Below are positions 1,517 to 56,020 of a DNA stretch of 64,000 nucleotides, one piece after another. The DNA comes from Bugula neritina (Eukaryota > Animalia > Bryozoa). The stretch is from assembly GCA_964035545.1 (NCBI GenBank), contig OZ037769.1, positions 16,522,633 through 16,586,632 on the forward strand, read 5' to 3'. Numbering within the stretch: position 1 is the first letter of the stretch; every line of letters begins with the position of its first letter. A program made the position numbers and the translations under genes. The notes under the pieces were generated by a model. That model was given only the letters and a program-made list of their open reading frames with translations, was not told where the DNA came from and made no database searches.

Positions 1517-4500
1517 CTAGGGATATCCATTCAACTTTGTGGCATTCTTTCTCAAAATGGGCTCGCTATCCGTAAGATCGCTGTCGTCGGAGAACTCAAA
1601 CTCCTGCATCTGCATAGTGTTCCAGTTCTCTTTGGGGGCAGACGTGCGTACCGGACGGTAAGAGCTGCGAGGGGCGGAGACGAGATATTTCATGACTACA
1701 AACGTAGCGGCGCAGATTACCATGGAGATGAGGGACGTGTAAATGAGAGACAGGGGGCCTATACTATCGATTGACAAGCCCACAATTGCCGGCACAGCCA
1801 TCTCCCCTAAAGCAGACGCACAGACAAACACAGCGGCCATCTTACTTGTAACTTTGATGTAATTTTCGAGCCACAGAACACCCGTAGGAAATATGGCGGC
1901 CATTCCAACACCCAGAGTCAAAGAGAAAAACCAAACCGGTCCGTTTAAAGCTGCAAATGCAGTAGTGGCGATGGCCAGGCCAGCTGTGGAAAACACCGAA
2001 ATGACGATAGAAACAATAAGCATGGTGTTGGGTGTCAAGCATTTAGACAGAGGTATACACAGGCCTCTAGCCATGGCAAACGAACCCCAATACAGGGAGG
2101 TAAGCAATGCCGCCCGCTTCTCACTCAGATGACTCCTGTGGTGTATGCTAAAAGTAGCAATAAACTGGCCATACGCCACTTCTGTGCCAACGTAAACAAA
2201 GAAAAAGACAAATGCTGCAGACATGACCTTCACCTTGTAACGGGTAGATACGTTGGAAGCTGTGAACTTATCCACTACTTCCTGCAGATCGTTTTCAGAC
2301 TTAAACCTAGCCATTCCGGTGCGACCTGAGCAGCATCCACATTGCAGACAGCAGAACACAACTCCAAACGTGACTAATACTATAGCAATGATAAGGTAAC
2401 TGAACTGCACTTTGGAAATGGAGGAGAAAACGTCTTTGGCTTGTTCAAAAAGAGAAGGTGCATGTGTGGAGTTACCACTTGAAAAAGTCTGCGGGGGTTT
2501 GGCATTGCTGTCGCCTGAATGTGATGGCTTAGCAGCCTTTGTGGTTGCCTTGGACTTTTCTGGAGTAAGAGTCGTTTGTTCTGGAGCGGGAATTGTCTTT
2601 TCTGGCTCTGCAGTAGGAGTTGTCTTTTCTGGATTAGGAGTTGTAGCCTCAGTAGTCGACACACTTGCTATCGTAGATGCATTAGACACACTAGCAGGAG
2701 TTGAGGTGGTTATTGCAGTAGTAGTTGAGGTGGTAGTGGACCGTCCCAGCTCTGAGCTAGACGCTGAGCCAGGGGCGGCTGAAGAGGGGTTGGAGTCGGA
2801 CAGTGAGGAGGAAAGGGGGGTCGTTGGAATCGTTTTGTTTGCTAAGTACGAGGAGGGATCCAAAGAAGAGTTTGTGAAAGAAGTTTCATTGAAAGTTCCT
2901 TCTGGAGGAGTGACCGCTGTGGAATTTTCTATACCGGCAGTATTACCACTACTAGTTGTAACAGTATCAGTACTACTTGTTGTAACAGTATTACCACTAC
3001 TAGTTGTAACAGTATCAGTACTACTAGTTGTAACAGTATCAGTACTACTAGTTGTAACAGCATCAGTACTACTAGTTGTAACAGTATCAGTACTACTAGT
3101 TGTAACAGTATCAGTACTACTAGTTGTAACAGTATCACCACTATTAGTTGTGGCACCATCAGTACTACTATTTTTAGTAGTACTAGTGTTAGTAGTACTA
3201 GTGCTAGGGGTACTGGTGTTAGTGGTAATAATGTTAGTTATACTGGTGTTAGTTGTACTGGAGTTAGTACTGTCAATTGAAACAGTATCAGTGTCAACAG
3301 CTGAAGTAGAGGAATGAGGTGATGGAAAACCTGTCAAGTTATTGGCAGAGACACCTGTGTCAGGAGCAGATGGTGTGGCAGCAAGGGTGACGTTCTCAGC
3401 GGTGTCACTAGAAAGCTGCTTGAGTTGAGTCTCATTGGAGTCAGTTGAAGAGTTTTCAGACGATGTCGCAGCTCTAGTAGTAAGAGGTGTAGTAAGGGGA
3501 GTAGCAGGGGGAGTAGTAGGGGGAGTAGTAGGGGGTGTGGTAGGGGGTGTGGTAGGGGGTGTAGTAGGGGGTGTGGTAGGGGGTGTGGTAGGGGGTGTGG
3601 TAGGGGGCAAGGAGGAGGTGAATAGCTTTTGTTTATTGTCATCGATATCTTTGCCAATATTATTGCCACTCCCGTCATTTAAGTCTTTGTTTTTGCTCAC
3701 CTCCCCTCCAGTATGTGAGGGTTTCACAGGAGCTGGCACAGCACTAGTCACACTTGTTGAAGTATTCAAGGATTTCACAGTAACTGGCACAGCACTAGTC
3801 ACACTTGTTGAAGTATTCAAGGATTTCCCAGAAGTGAATTGAGTAGAGGAAGTGAAGGCAGACGGGAGACTAGAAAGTGAGTCATTAGTTGCAAGTGCTG
3901 CCCGTTTGCTCAGCACTTGAGGCACGGAGGCAGCAGGAGTAGTCAAAGTGAAGTTGTCTCCCAGCTCCATCGATGTGTTACAAGTTAGCCCTGAAACTGA
4001 ACTCAAGAATGGGGCAGCTACGAGGGGCGCAATACAAGCCCCGAGTCCAAACGCAAAGTGCAACGACTGCATGTATGGGCCACTGCTTTTCCCCCAGATC
4101 TTCAGGCATATAACATTTCCACCTGCAATAAATAGTCAACTGTGTAAGGATATGACATAGCATAGCATATATATGACATAGTATAGCCTATATATGACAT
4201 AGCATAACATATATATGACATAGCATAGTGTATATATGACATAGCATAGCGTATATATGACATAGCATAGTATATATAACACAGCATAGCGTATATATGA
4301 CACAACATAGCGTATATATGACACAGCATACCTGTGTCCAGGAATCCCATAGCTATACTAGTTAATGAGAGGAGAACACAGAGTGTGGGGAGTGAGAAAA
4401 CCCAAGGAGCTATGCAGATTGCTAGAAATAAATATATAAAATTCAATATTACCATGGTATATGTTATATGTTATACCTAAATAATCAAGGTTCTTTTTAA

Positions 4501-21780: not shown

Positions 21781-23728
21781 ATGAAGGCAAGACTGGTGGT
21801 AGGTGTTAGCATAGCGTTAGTAGTGGGAGTAGCAGTCACACTCGCAGTAGTCTTGACACTGAATAGGACAAAAGATAAGAAGGTAGATAGACAGTATGCT
21901 GAGACAGATCACGTGGTTGCAGTGTATGACCATGTGTACGTTAGTGGGCCAGCGACCTCTAGAGATGAAGCTCTACAAATCATGAGAGCTAATGCTGACA
22001 TATTTGGACATCAGATGAGCTTAGCGAAGTCAAAGGTATACTTGTAACAGGTGTTGGTTGATGTGTATATGTTGAGGTGAACCAGTTGCTAAATTCTACA
22101 AAGCACTAGCGCTGGGTCAGGAGAAGCTAACTTCTTATTAATCTAAAAGAAAAAGTTATATATGTGGTCCAATTACAGTGAATCAGAAGTGCTCGTAAAT
22201 AGCAGAGGAAGTCCAATAGCCCAACTTCTTTCAGTTTTAAATGAGTTTTGGTTTGGGGTTTGAAGTAGAAATTCTTTTACATTTTTATATTGAACCATCG
22301 CTCTTCTCATCTTCTCCCTTTTTTATTTGAAATACCAGCTCTATGCATGGCACACTTTATATCACAGCGACCGGCGTATTAGATTTTGTAATTTGCATTA
22401 CTAAAGTATAATATTATATATAGCCAATAGCTTCCATGCATATTATACTAGTTATTCACCCTTATAAATGAATAGAGTTTTCTTTTGCCTAGGAGGTAGA
22501 GTTAATTGTCTTCCCAGAGTATGGTCTTACAGGACACATCAACAAAACAGGAAGAGAGAGTCTATATCCATATGCGGAGAAAATTCCAGATGTCGGGACA
22601 GATGAGTCATGTATGAGCTGTGACTCATATCAGACAGGAAGTGAGACTGTGAACTACGTCTCATGTTTAGCTAGAAACTACAGCATGTATGTAGTAGTCA
22701 ACCAGCTAGAGAAGGTAGCGTGTGACAATGTGAGTGGATGTCCATATGGTGATGGCATGCTTATATATAACACTAACGTTATATTCGACCCTAAAGGATG
22801 TATTGTAGCCAAGTATCATAAATATCATATGTGGGGAAATGAGAAACATACAGTTGATAGACCCCTAAACCCCGAGTATGTTTTTATAGATACTCCGCTT
22901 GGTAGACTGGGAACTTTTATATGCTTTGATGCAGTTTTTGAAGAGCCCAGTCTTGCTCTGATTAACCGGTATAAAGTAGACGCCATTTTTTTTCCAACCA
23001 TGTGGACGATGCTAAATGCTAGCACACAGTTTTACCAGAATATTGTAGAATATTCATCCGGGTTTGCCCGCAGACACAAAGTTAATTTTCTCGCTGCAAA
23101 CATCAGAGATCATGATCAAAACTGTTACGGGAGTGCTATTTCTACACCAATCGGAATTGCTGATGCTTATTACGAGCCGAATCAGACAGAAGGAAAATTG
23201 TTATTGGCAAAAATCCCTTTCATAAAAAATAAGAAATATTCTAAAATAACGAATTCAAACCATGTTGAGGCTAGCAACTTTACGGTAGTAACCCCTCCTG
23301 ACGGCCGGAACTATCATGTCAACCCGTTGGATAAGACGAGTGACACGGTAAAAGTGTGTTATGATCAACTCTGCTGTAAAGTTGAATATGAGAATAAAAC
23401 TGGTTCAGACACAATGATCCTTGCCGCCTACAGCTGGTTTGATCCCTCGGAAAACACACCTGGAGAGGTCTGTCTACTGCAGACGTGTAAAGGTGAGTCA
23501 TATGACTCATGCTTTGACTTTCCGATATCTGAGAGTGACATCAGATTCAGTCACATCCGGGTATCTGGTCATTTCGTTTCTTCCTATGTCTACCCATTGG
23601 TGGTGAGCTCCGGGTATGAGGTGGCGGGATTTGATTGGTCATACAGGTTTTCGGGGAAATATAACGAGATCGAGATGGCGGATGCTGATTGGCCAATACA
23701 GACCGCAGCCTTACAAACATTCTATTAA
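21781..23728 (+). CDS. Vanin/biotinidase-family amidohydrolase (nitrilase superfamily); exons 21781-22035 and 22493-23728
   Basis: Catalytic triad motifs ELIVFPEYGL (E), KYHKYH (K), FICFD (C); YNTNVIFD; Cys-rich base domain VCYDQLCCKVEY; the phase-0 junction is in frame. Confidence 0.9.
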
Positions 23729-24685
23729 TATTTACACATTGCATTTAGCTATAATATGCTATATGCTGTGCTATAGTGTACTATGCTTTACTATACTTTG
23801 TTATACTATACTATGCTATTTTCTACTATGCTATACTATACTATATGCTATACCATGCTATACAGTATACTATGCTGCATGCTTTATACTATATACTATG
23901 CTTTACTATATTACGTATATTACATAATACATACTATAATGTGATATTTTATATGCAGCTGCTTTTGTGCATATTATATTATATATTTATCTTACATAAT
24001 AATAAGCCATTTACCTGTGAAACACACAACTTTTACACCAAGTTTGACTTGAGTTGAATTTTTTTGCTTTAAACCATTTGCAGTGCAGCAGGCACTTATA
24101 TTTCAAAATATGAATGTCAACCACTAGGATGACAAGTAAAGTGTATTATTTATCAGTTTCATCACATTATACAAACAGATAATTGTGGTTTACAACTTGA
24201 GATAGACAATTCACACAGCTGTTAAAGATGTGTGATAATATTTATAATATTCAATTCTCCTTGAATTATCCGCAGTAATGGCTGAGCCCAGCTACCAGAC
24301 AATCTCAAACTTACTAACCAATTATAGCATAACCTGATAAGAGTTGAAAAGAATATTTCACTCCACAACAAATAGTTGTTAGCACCCTATTGTCCAGGAG
24401 AAGTATTCTAATTGATTTTTTAATTAATAAAACAATATAAGACACGTGTCAAGCGACGTATAAAATAAATTATTAACATTTTGGGATTAGGGTCCATGCA
24501 AAACCGTTACTGTAGGAAGGTGGGCTGCTGAAATACATTAAATTTTTCGTAACGCAGCATAATTCAGTTTAATCATGATTAAATTAATAAAATATAAATT
24601 CGTGCATCAGCTGAATGTGCAGTCAATAAATATTTATTAGAGGCAAGAAATAATTAATTAGTTGTAAGTAGCTTGGTGGCTAGGA

Positions 24686-24777
24686 TATAAAAACTCTACT
24701 GCTGCTGTGATACGGCAGCAGATAGAGTGGCAGCGTACTAGACAGGCAGCATTACGACAGACAGCACTTGACAGCAG
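24686..24777 (+). promoter_or_regulatory. TATA box (TATAAAA, 24686-24692) and probable non-coding first exon ending at CAG|GTGAGT (24777)
   Basis: Consensus TATA followed by a short, relatively GC-rich segment and a consensus donor, upstream of the prepropeptide gene. Confidence 0.6.
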
Positions 24778-25197
24778 GTGAGTGTTTTACTTATTACAAA
24801 GTTGAAGATATTTACTAATCAATTATATGCACAGGATATAAAATTCATTTAATATAAATAGAAATATTAGTACATTATAATGAATCATTAAATTGTGGTG
24901 TAAAATATATAATAAACACTATTTTATGTTTCTATTTCATTATATTGCTACATATTATATTATTAATATTATGTTATGCCATCAGTTTATTACATCAATG
25001 TTATGTTATTACTACATGATATATGGTATTATATTATACTATTATTACATGATCATCAATTATATAATATTATAATATGAATGTATTTCACTACATTTTC
25101 AGAATGTACTCTGTTAATATTACAAGGTCCATAACAGGTGAAATATATGTTTTTTTTCAATTACAGCATTTCAACTTATAGCCAAGTAAAGAGAAAG

Positions 25198-25669
25198 ATG
25201 TTGATACTAATTTTAGCTACTCTCTGCATTAGTGTGACGTGTGCTCCTTTATATGACGCCGTCCCCTCTGCAACTGAGCAAGGTATGTAGAACTGAAGCT
25301 AACTTGCTGTGACCTTCATATGGCATTGTTAGTTGCCTATAATGCACTATGTCGCATATTAGTTTACAATAACCATACCTTACTACCATGTTTCTAATCT
25401 GTGCTGGGAGTTGTCTACTGTCCAGTACACTTGGAGTTATTGTATTAATAGGATCAGTGGGTGGTTTCCATGGTAACTCGGAGGTATACCAGAAACTCAT
25501 GCTGCCACCACAGGGAGTACCGGCTGCTGCCGAAACAACACTCTCACCAGAATTCTGGAGACAGGTCTATGGCCTGAATATGCTACCGTATGTCAGAAAA
25601 CGAAAAAACTCTCGCATTAGCCAATTGCTGTACAACTACAAACGAAGACCCGTTGAATGGATCGGTTAA
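25198..25669 (+). CDS. Orphan 100-aa secreted prepropeptide, candidate neuropeptide precursor; exons 25198-25282 and 25452-25669
   Basis: Spliced translation MLILILATLCISVTCAPLYDAVPSATEQ-G-SVGGFHGNSEVYQKLMLPPQGVPAAAETTLSPEFWRQVYGLNMLPYV-RKRK-NSRISQLLYNY-KRR-PVEWIG*: hydrophobic signal peptide, basic cleavage sites and terminal Gly. The AG|GTATGT donor and TAG acceptor are in phase; AATAAA at 26001. Confidence 0.75.
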
Positions 25670-26779
25670 CTGTCACATGTGAATTCATTATTATCTGTAA
25701 TGTTTTATGGACTAATGTGTAGGCTATTTGTCTTTGCCTTGACATGCATTTCCTATAGTAGACCAGTAACCGTCAAAGTATAACAATTAGCAAACTCTAG
25801 TGATGTGAATTCAACGCTACATATAATAACATATCAAGTTTTAAGGAAAATATCATCTCTGACATCTTATACACATGTATCAGTATTCATAGAATTGTAT
25901 CACAAAACTTAATATTTTAACTTTATGATGGCTAAAATTTATGGTTTTCTTATGACTTGAAACTTGCACTTTGTGTTTATTACTCAACATTTCTGTATCA
26001 AATAAACTATGTATTTCATATCATATTATCGTATTAGGTATATCATATAGCTACTTTACATATAATTCATTAATCGCTATCAGCTACGCAATATGGGGTA
26101 TTTCAAATATGCTAAAGATGTTGCAAAAAGCTGAATTAGATAAAAAAGTTATCATCAGTTGAACAACATTTACTGAGACATAATTTCCATGATTCAGATT
26201 TCTAATCTTAGTAATTACTGGAATAGAAACGGATGTCTAAATTTATTGAACCAGTAAAACATACAGTCCTTTGAGATCTGTCTAGTATAGGAACATAATA
26301 TAACCACGAGCAATCATTCTAGCATATAACAGACAATACAAATAGAGAGAGAGCTCAATGTTGAATACTACTTTGGTTAAACAGGCTATATAGCACTACT
26401 CCGTTTAATATAAGACACAAAAATGTGTAGCCAGTATAAAATTGCAGAATAGTAAAATACACTACCCAGTACCCTAGAAATATTAATAACAGTAAAATAT
26501 TATATTGCATTCTAGTTTGGAAGATTTCACGTAAAAGGAGATGAAAATTGAGAGTAACGTACTTTAAAAGTAGAGAAATAATCATGGGGTAGGAAATTGG
26601 TAAAGTTTTGTAGAAATTATGAGTGACTAGAGATTAGGTTGCGAGAAACGGAACGTTCATATTGTTCATATTTCCTACACACGATGCTGCCCGGCAGCAT
26701 TTTTCACATCTATGATACAGTTTTGATAAACAGTTAGTCTTAGCGAGGAATAGTTGTGGAATGTTGTATAGCCTTAGCA

Positions 26780-32686: not shown

Positions 32687-48757
<16,071 letters not shown>

Positions 48758-55221: not shown

Positions 55222-56020
55222 GCTCAGCTGGAGCGTCTCGTAGCTATGAAAAATTACGAAGGAGCATTCAAACAGGCACTGACGCTGTCAACTTGTCTAT
55301 ACTCATCTACTCACTTGGCAAGCTGCCAGACAGCTCTCTTGTCTTTGCTGACCCTTGCCCGCTGTCTCAACCACTCCTGCTGTCGCTGATACAGCAGCTT
55401 TCAGTTGGACTTCTTTCTCCAAACTCTCTACTGGACCTTCTATTCGAGTGAGTCGAGTTTGTATGACTGTATACTCTGTCTATATGACTGTATACTCTGT
55501 CTATATGACTGTATACTCTGTCTATATGACTGTATACTCTGTCTATATGACTGTATATTCTGTCTATATGACTGTATACTCTGTCTATATGACTGTATAC
55601 TCTGTCTATATGACTGTATACTGTGTCTATATGACTGTATACTCTGTCTATATGACTGTATATTCTGTCTATATGACTTTATACTCTCTCTATATGGCTG
55701 TGTGCTCTGTCTATATGACTGTATACTCTGTCTATATGGCTGTGTGCTCTGTCTATATGACTGTGTACTCTGTCTATATGACTGTGTACTCTCTCTATAT
55801 GACTGTGTACTCTCTATATATTTCATTTAGTTATCTTTCTGATGCTATAATGAACCTTGACCCCCACGACCCTGTCACCATCCAGAACCTGGGTATCGTA
55901 ACAGATGTCAAGGACAAACTCTCAGAGTTTATGCTAAAGAATCCCAAGTCCGAACACAGTAGAACTGTGGCAGCTATTGAGAAATCTATAAAGTTACTCA
56001 TCAGATATGCAAGCCCCTAG
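55222..56020 (+). pseudogene. EDC4: Duplicated last two exons of EDC4 (55222-55447, 55831-56020), promoterless and frameshifted
   Basis: Near-identical to 48021-48757, but CAGGCACTCGAC has become CAGGCACTGAC (1-nt deletion at ~55280), plus D>N, L>S and Q>L changes. Confidence 0.88.

Follow-up and report, generated by a model that had tools for sequence, protein, structure and literature searches.

The eleven peptide-hormone precursors published for Bugula neritina (Wong et al. 2016), among them insulin-like peptides and pedal/FDSIG-like, vasopressin-like, NPF and GPB5 precursors, are also all those published for any bryozoan (PMC4990251), and we found no newer bryozoan neuropeptide catalogue in the literature. 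Precursors of the PDF/cerebrin family, which occurs in lophotrochozoans (phoronids, brachiopods, nemerteans, annelids and molluscs), end in KR-NAGIRDMLYNLPDFTKI-GK in a phoronid, in KR-NQWTVDSLYNLPDLTAV-GR in a brachiopod and in KR-NPGTLDAVLDMPDLMSL-GRK in the annelid Platynereis. Here we analyze a 64,000-nucleotide stretch of the B. neritina genome (contig OZ037769.1, positions 16,522,633 to 16,586,632; hereafter the window), which contains a gene for a short, putative peptide precursor with a weak resemblance to that family. The gene is undescribed: neither it nor anything similar appears in the list of Wong et al., which concerns the same organism group, and the genome encodes the published vasopressin-like CYIRTCDLGIL exactly (PMC4990251), as expected if it comes from B. 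neritina or a very close relative.

Reading the sequence as a whole, we conclude that this single-copy, three-exon gene of a B. neritina-group bryozoan probably encodes a secreted precursor of the neuropeptide or hormone type, which would be processed and amidated. Its family would be either specific to bryozoans or too diverged to place. Translation of the window, with the split codon GGA giving Gly, yields a + strand product of 100 residues, consisting of a 15-residue leader, a spacer of ~60 residues, RKRK, NSRISQLLYNY, KRR and PVEWIG-stop. The basic clusters occupy precursor residues 76-79 and 91-93, and the final residue is Gly. The exon 2 product is MLILILATLCISVTCAPLYDAVPSATEQ, and the exon 3 product has 71 residues, with the terminal part VRKRKNSRISQLLYNYKRRPVEWIG-stop. 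Of the generic features of a peptide precursor, an N-terminal leader, candidate peptides flanked by basic sites and a C-terminal Gly donor are present. The original prediction had proposed this layout, along with three exons, a TATA box and a poly(A) signal; the layout could be read directly off the exon 2 and exon 3 translations, and every other element was found at its proposed position. The features are as follows, where X1 and X2 are public sequencing runs and L001 is the corresponding locus of a sibling lineage.

24686-24692, + strand: candidate TATA box, TATAAAA, present in the window and in L001.
24612-24777, + strand: exon 1, non-coding; its 5' limit is at least 24612 in one spliced contig of X2, which then continues into exon 2.
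24778, + strand: donor GT of intron 1, from the window letters.
24778-25166, + strand: intron 1, GT..AG, with the acceptor CAG ending at 25166; absent from X1 and X2 contigs.
25167-25282, + strand: exon 2, comprising 31 nt of 5' untranslated region (UTR), codons 1-28 and base 1 of codon 29, from the translation and the contigs.
25198, + strand: start ATG, with A at -3; the first ATG 3' of the TATA region.
25198-25242, + strand: predicted signal peptide MLILILATLCISVTC, with a predicted cut before Ala16, from hydropathy and the -3/-1 rule.
25283-25451, + strand: intron 2, 169 nt, GT..AG, phase 1, with the donor GT at 25283 and the acceptor AG at 25450-25451, from the joint 25282/25452.
25452-25669, + strand: coding part of exon 3, codons 29-100 and TAA (25667-25669), from the translation, with contigs reaching 25563 and 25576.
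25595-25606, + strand: RKRK, predicted convertase site, from the translation; RKRE in the sibling lineage.
25607-25639, + strand: NSRISQLLYNY, predicted to be an 11-mer or to form the N-terminal half of a 19-mer, from the translation.
25640-25648, + strand: KRR followed by Pro, candidate cleavage site, from the translation.
25649-25666, + strand: PVEWIG, predicted C-terminal peptide, with the Gly amide donor directly before the stop, from the translation.
26001-26006, + strand: candidate poly(A) signal, AATAAA, the sole canonical hexamer within ~830 nt of the stop.

Exon 1 has no ATG within 24716-24777 and a single four-codon upstream open reading frame (ORF), at 24615. The mechanical ORF list for this locus contains only a 93-residue frame starting at an ATG in intron 2 (25388), the false start that the original prediction had pointed out. 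A prokaryotic gene caller likewise placed the start inside the intron for P0001, the protein from a related metagenome contig.

Evidence for splicing came from X1 and X2, which total 37-39 Mb of contigs and belong to a study other than that of a third public run, X3, in which the whole stretch lies in one contig at ~70x and which is probably a DNA source. The X1/X2 contigs start at 24612 or 24757 and read through to 24777, where they skip to ~25167-25172; from there they extend to 25282 and then skip to 25452. The second joint, 25282/25452, present in a single contig from X1 and another from X2, is exactly the coding junction that had been predicted, with GT..AG at the intron ends. Five letters after the first joint deviate from the window, as would be expected if the acceptor lay at 25166/25167 and the lineage had diverged. 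No X1/X2 contig lies inside either intron or downstream of the gene. Because the contigs are without introns, the material behaves as complementary DNA, and the segments 24778-25166 and 25283-25451, which the contigs skip, confirm the two introns, an in-phase junction between the coding parts and, from GT..AG, the + strand. The depth of these contigs is low, 2-4x, which fits the low abundance published for Bugula neuropeptide transcripts (PMC4990251).

Contigs cannot show transcript ends, and those of X1/X2 neither support nor contradict the candidate TATA box, upstream of which they begin, with one spliced contig starting at 24612, 74 nt upstream, and an unspliced contig at 24528, 158 nt upstream. 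At the other end, the candidate poly(A) signal is beyond the reach of every transcript contig, and the same position reads AATATA in the sibling lineage (L001 and L002).

The leader behaves as expected of a signal peptide, as had been claimed. Residues 1-15 have a mean Kyte-Doolittle hydropathy of 2.63, compared to -0.24 for the next 13 residues, and a rule-based check found Val at -3 and Cys at -1, in agreement with the -3/-1 rule. The variants seen in other lineages, L6I and C10F, keep the leader hydrophobic. AlphaFold gave no confident fold for the exon 3 product (mean pLDDT, or predicted local distance difference test, 56), and predicted only a low-confidence helix over RISQLLYNYKR (residues 54-64). 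Such poor confidence in the model is more in keeping with a propeptide than with a domain protein.

Three versions of the gene, 5-7% apart in DNA, are available: that of the window, that of the Joint Genome Institute (JGI) metagenome contigs L001 and L002, and that of the X1/X2 contigs. B. neritina is a complex of sibling species, which would explain the three versions. Over the parts that each covers, the coding part has no indels or stops in any of the three lineages. In the X1/X2 lineage the frame is intact across codons 1-69, and each change there is either conservative or shared. The sibling locus L001 has 93-95% DNA identity to the window, with all 20 C-terminal residues unchanged, NSRISQLLYNY identical in P0001, and basic sites that read RKRE (with RKR kept), KRR and Gly-stop. 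Between the window and L001, the proportions of synonymous (pS) and non-synonymous (pN) differences are 0.174 and 0.047 in the exon 3 spacer, and 0.077 and 0 in the last 20 codons, where the one synonymous change falls in PVEWIG and leaves the protein the same in P0001. Exon 2 has no synonymous change and a single non-synonymous one, which turns Cys10 in the hydrophobic core into Phe. Over the whole frame there are 7 non-synonymous and 8 synonymous changes, for a pN/pS of ~0.27. The amino-acid changes in exon 3 (S/P, K/R, G/R, S/L, V/A and K/E) are all N-terminal of Asn52 of its product. Because pS is 0.17 and pN 0.047 in the spacer and the C-terminus has no non-synonymous change, the frame appears to be under purifying selection, and on the sequences compared constraint on the C-terminus is no weaker than on the rest of the frame.

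Intron 1 is poorly conserved between the window and L001. It carries an insertion of ~240 bp in the sibling lineage (L001:173-415; 3' portion in L002:1-190) that is absent from the window, at 24807/24808. The L001 insertion has an antisense tRNA-like B-box, GGTTCGAACC, and resembles a short interspersed element polymorphic between Bugula lineages; ARAGORN made no call that would identify it as a tRNA.

If the precursor is processed as its layout suggests, the leader would route it into the secretory pathway, where subtilisin-like prohormone convertases would cleave behind RKR(K) and, probably, inside KR|R-Pro, and a carboxypeptidase E-like enzyme would trim the basic residues. Peptidylglycine alpha-amidating monooxygenase would then convert the terminal Gly to an amide. 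The expected products would be RPVEWI-NH2 (or PVEWI-NH2) and NSRISQLLYNY; were KRR-Pro spared, a single Ile-amide of 19-20 residues would result. The peptide or peptides would act as a neuropeptide or hormone through a receptor. Amidating-type enzymes are likely to be available, because the genome has many Cu2_monooxygenase exons above the Pfam cut-off. The 24 exon-level matches, of the PHM/DBH/MOXD type, lie on C3, C4, C5, C8 and C9, for example at C4:5716422-5730349, C9:5516342-5544697 and C3:32009414-32022322, and are a large number for an animal with a genome of this size; several form tandem clusters.

Which product would be made depends on the KRR-Pro site. Arg-Arg-Pro is a poor convertase site, with Pro at P1' disfavoring a cut after the second Arg. 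In neurotensin the Arg-Arg-Pro is left intact, and in substance P the cut falls between the two Arg, so that the Arg-Pro N-terminus is kept. By this analogy, RPVEWI-NH2 or the uncut 19-mer would be likelier than PVEWI-NH2, because the site is poor. The analogy is one of processing only, as neither peptide has a sequence relationship with the Bugula precursor.

We searched for relatives of the gene exon by exon. The exon 3 product had P0001 (92% identity) as its sole match among 5.8 billion clustered proteins, and a HMMER search over 1.84 billion representatives returned P0001 and one spurious protein, P0005 (E = 2e-4, three stretches), a 262-residue internally repeated protein that aligns with the spacer only. 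Pfam gave nothing at E <= 10 and the ESM Atlas no neighbors for the exon 3 product, and two metagenome scans for the gene found nothing. The gene's only match in its own genome was itself. A candidate paralog at a vanin-like locus 860 kb away (L014 and L015) scored 21.2 and 18.9 bits by tblastn, compared to 13-18.9 bits in unrelated 3-kb loci, and its frame is full of stops; we take it to be a chance match. Motif look-ups found no peptide ending in EWIG or in a C-terminal WIG in the Platynereis, nemertean, brachiopod and phoronid catalogs, and literature searches returned no relevant match for PVEWI, EWIamide, WIamide or the 11-mer.

The original prediction had called the precursor an orphan that matches none of the RFamide, MIP/Wamide, APGWamide, tachykinin or luqin motifs. 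The second part of that claim was borne out. The first part was supported insofar as neither the Pfam and ESM Atlas searches, nor those of the two very large protein collections, nor the motifs looked up in the catalogs of annelids, nemerteans, brachiopods and phoronids pointed to a described family. It has to be qualified insofar as the 19-mer, if uncut, resembles PDF/cerebrin at its first 10 residues and its end. The resemblance is weak, and orphan is probably the best current label on the sequence comparisons made.

Several points weigh against a neuropeptide or hormone precursor. That X1 and X2 are RNA is only a guess. Their contigs end at 25563 and 25576, leaving the final 30 codons and the 3' end outside their coverage. 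No search returned a homolog more distant than the 92%-identical sibling. The concentration of residue changes outside the C-terminal part (6 of 51 residues before it and 0 of 20 within), counted against that sibling only, is not significant (Fisher p = 0.17). Finally, antimicrobial or defense peptides, too, include small cationic ones that are secreted and have an amide donor.

The best-surviving alternative is that the gene is a diverged bryozoan ortholog of PDF/cerebrin, which we consider unlikely. On this account KRR-Pro is mostly spared, and the product is an uncut 19-20-mer, (K/E)NSRISQLLYNYKRRPVEWI-NH2, acting on a PDF-type family-B G-protein-coupled receptor. The 19-mer that follows RKRK if KRR-Pro is uncut, NSRISQLLYNYKRRPVEWI-NH2, is itself followed by Gly-stop. 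Like the PDF/cerebrin peptides of the nearest phyla, it begins with Asn1 immediately behind the basic site, has Ile4 and Leu8-Tyr9-Asn10, and ends in an aliphatic residue before the Gly. The setting is also shared: one peptide, of 17-20 residues if KRR-Pro is spared, stands at the extreme C-terminus of a short precursor (~100 residues), with KR before it and Gly plus basic residues or a stop after it. In N-anchored, ungapped comparisons with six PDF/cerebrin members, 4 of 100,000 shuffles scored as high as the first 10 residues of the peptide, and 8 of 10,000 did so when 13 residues were compared. However, because the likeness emerged after by-eye comparison with many of the ~70 neuropeptide families described, the corrected significance is ~0.003-0.06, and the Bugula scores of 14 (10 residues) and 10.3 (13 residues) are far below the member-to-member ranges of 19-29 and 33-44.

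The positions best conserved in PDF/cerebrin are lost. The family core is D-[SMA]-[LMV]-[YWFIL]-N-L-P-D, whereas Bugula has Q-L-L-Y-N-Y-K-R, in which only L-Y-N is kept: Asp6 is replaced by Gln, and Leu11-Pro12-Asp13 by Tyr-Lys-Arg. The Bugula peptide is two residues longer than family members and has the tribasic Lys-Arg-Arg-Pro inside it. The spacer also lacks the amphipathic helix motif of the PDF-associated peptide (..EIxxxAxxIxRIAL..), which occurs in annelids, nemerteans and brachiopods and is not obvious in phoronids. The Pfam model PF06324 (Pigment_DH) did not match the exon 3 product at E <= 10, a weak test with an arthropod-based model. Because Asp6 and the Leu-Pro-Asp core are missing, membership of PDF/cerebrin is not established.

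We also looked for a canonical PDF gene elsewhere in the 216-Mb genome. The strict DNA pattern [YWF]NLPD[LF]xx[IV]G[KR] / DxxxNLPD had 0 matches, and a looser canonical pattern had 4, compared to 2 in the control, none of them a peptide gene. Run on the whole genome, the Pfam PDH model had two sub-threshold matches, both at chance level: one (L004) contains stops, and the other (L005), reading NSDFINYYFSLPKRCISKGK, has no preceding basic site and no plausible exon, and its frame runs on. Failing to find a canonical PDF gene elsewhere leaves room for a diverged ortholog, though it is weak negative evidence.

Slightly less likely again is a non-neural secreted peptide, for instance one that is cationic and has a defense or antimicrobial role, or one secreted by larvae or colonies, freed from an anionic pro-region by furin-type cleavage. 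The charges would suit such a peptide, at +3 for the 19-mer and -3 for the spacer, and no family membership links the gene to neuropeptides. The 19-mer is also weakly amphipathic, with a hydrophobic moment of 0.49 compared to 0.27 in shuffles, and a helix is predicted over residues 54-64 of the exon 3 product. However, 6.7% of shuffles reach that moment, so that the amphipathicity is not significant, and a helix-breaking Pro and the tribasic site lie in the middle of the peptide. Defense peptides usually belong to expanding, fast-evolving families, whereas this gene is single-copy and its 20 C-terminal residues are unchanged at a synonymous divergence of 0.08-0.17; the very low transcript depth also argues against this role. 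A real transcript whose frame has no functional product, that is, a spliced non-coding RNA with an ORF that is young or mere noise, would account for the low depth and for the failure to find homologs outside the species complex, but is very improbable given the pN/pS of ~0.27 (7 versus 8 changes), the intact frame in three lineages, the good context of an ATG that is the first 3' of the TATA region, and the low chance of a leader, two basic clusters and a terminal Gly occurring together.

Returning to the neuropeptide or hormone precursor that we favor, we tentatively suggest that the gene founds a bryozoan-restricted family in which RPVEWI-amide or the 19-mer Ile-amide signals through its own receptor. 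A rarer variant is that the gene descends from PDF/cerebrin, the ancestral hormone having been split into two peptides by the new Lys-Arg-Arg-Pro site.

In Bugula, settlement of the larvae is a problem of fouling and ecology, and the nervous system is thought to control it. Once validated, an amidated peptide would provide a probe for the small larval nervous system, whether as an antibody, an in situ marker or a bath-applied peptide. If the link to PDF/cerebrin is true, the gene would reveal the extent to which a hormone conserved across bilaterians can drift in bryozoans; if the peptide has its own receptor, the two would make up a lineage-specific signaling system in a phylum with hardly any neuropeptides charted. 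Most new neuropeptidomes contain orphan, lineage-restricted precursors. On the present evidence, the gene is a useful annotation and not a surprise.

Several observations concern other parts of the window and its chromosome. A vanin/biotinidase-like frame of 371 codons (CN_hydrolase and Vanin_C) occupies 22613-23728 (+), 1.5 kb upstream of the peptide gene, and an unspliced X1 contig, 24528-24772, may be read-through from it or part of its 3' UTR. The same chromosome carries a second vanin-like gene, with 78% protein identity to the first, at a distance of ~860 kb (G000:C5, near 17.405 Mb). Downstream of this paralogous gene is a tandem repeat of ~40 bp (L014:2056-2426; units like CTAGCTGTAACGTACATCTA), which also matches window positions 2949-3151, inside an 851-codon frame (1517-4072, -) without a Pfam domain. 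Exons for the WD40 and C-terminal domains of EDC4 (Ge-1) lie at 33502-34893, 48155-48757 and 55355-56020 (+); EDC4_C has two matches 7 kb from each other, suggesting either that the terminal exon is duplicated or that the gene has a tandem copy. The CYIRTCDLGIL exon is present in two identical copies, 7 kb apart, on the chromosome of the window (G000:C5:7281489-7281520 and 7288522-7288553, -; L012 and L013), implying a tandem duplication of the vasopressin-type gene, of which one is listed in PMC4990251.

Two further families share the Trp near the end of the Bugula peptide. The WI peptides of Platynereis and Capitella, relatives of MIP/Wamide, also end in Trp-Ile, but they are non-amidated, contain two Trp (W-x6-7-W-[I/L]) and occur in ~26 copies per precursor, whereas the Bugula precursor contains a single Trp and a single copy of the peptide, which has an amide donor. 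Membership of MIP/Wamide, including the WI peptides, was rejected on the two-Trp, multi-copy pattern. Leucokinins (F-x-x-W-x-amide) likewise have Trp as the second-last residue of an amidated C-terminus, and some insect kinins start with Asn-Ser and carry internal basic pairs. However, lophotrochozoan leucokinin precursors, as in Platynereis, are multi-copy, and in Bugula, where the C-terminus reads P-V-E-W-I-Gly, Pro takes the place of the defining Phe, five residues from the end; we therefore place the precursor outside the leucokinins.

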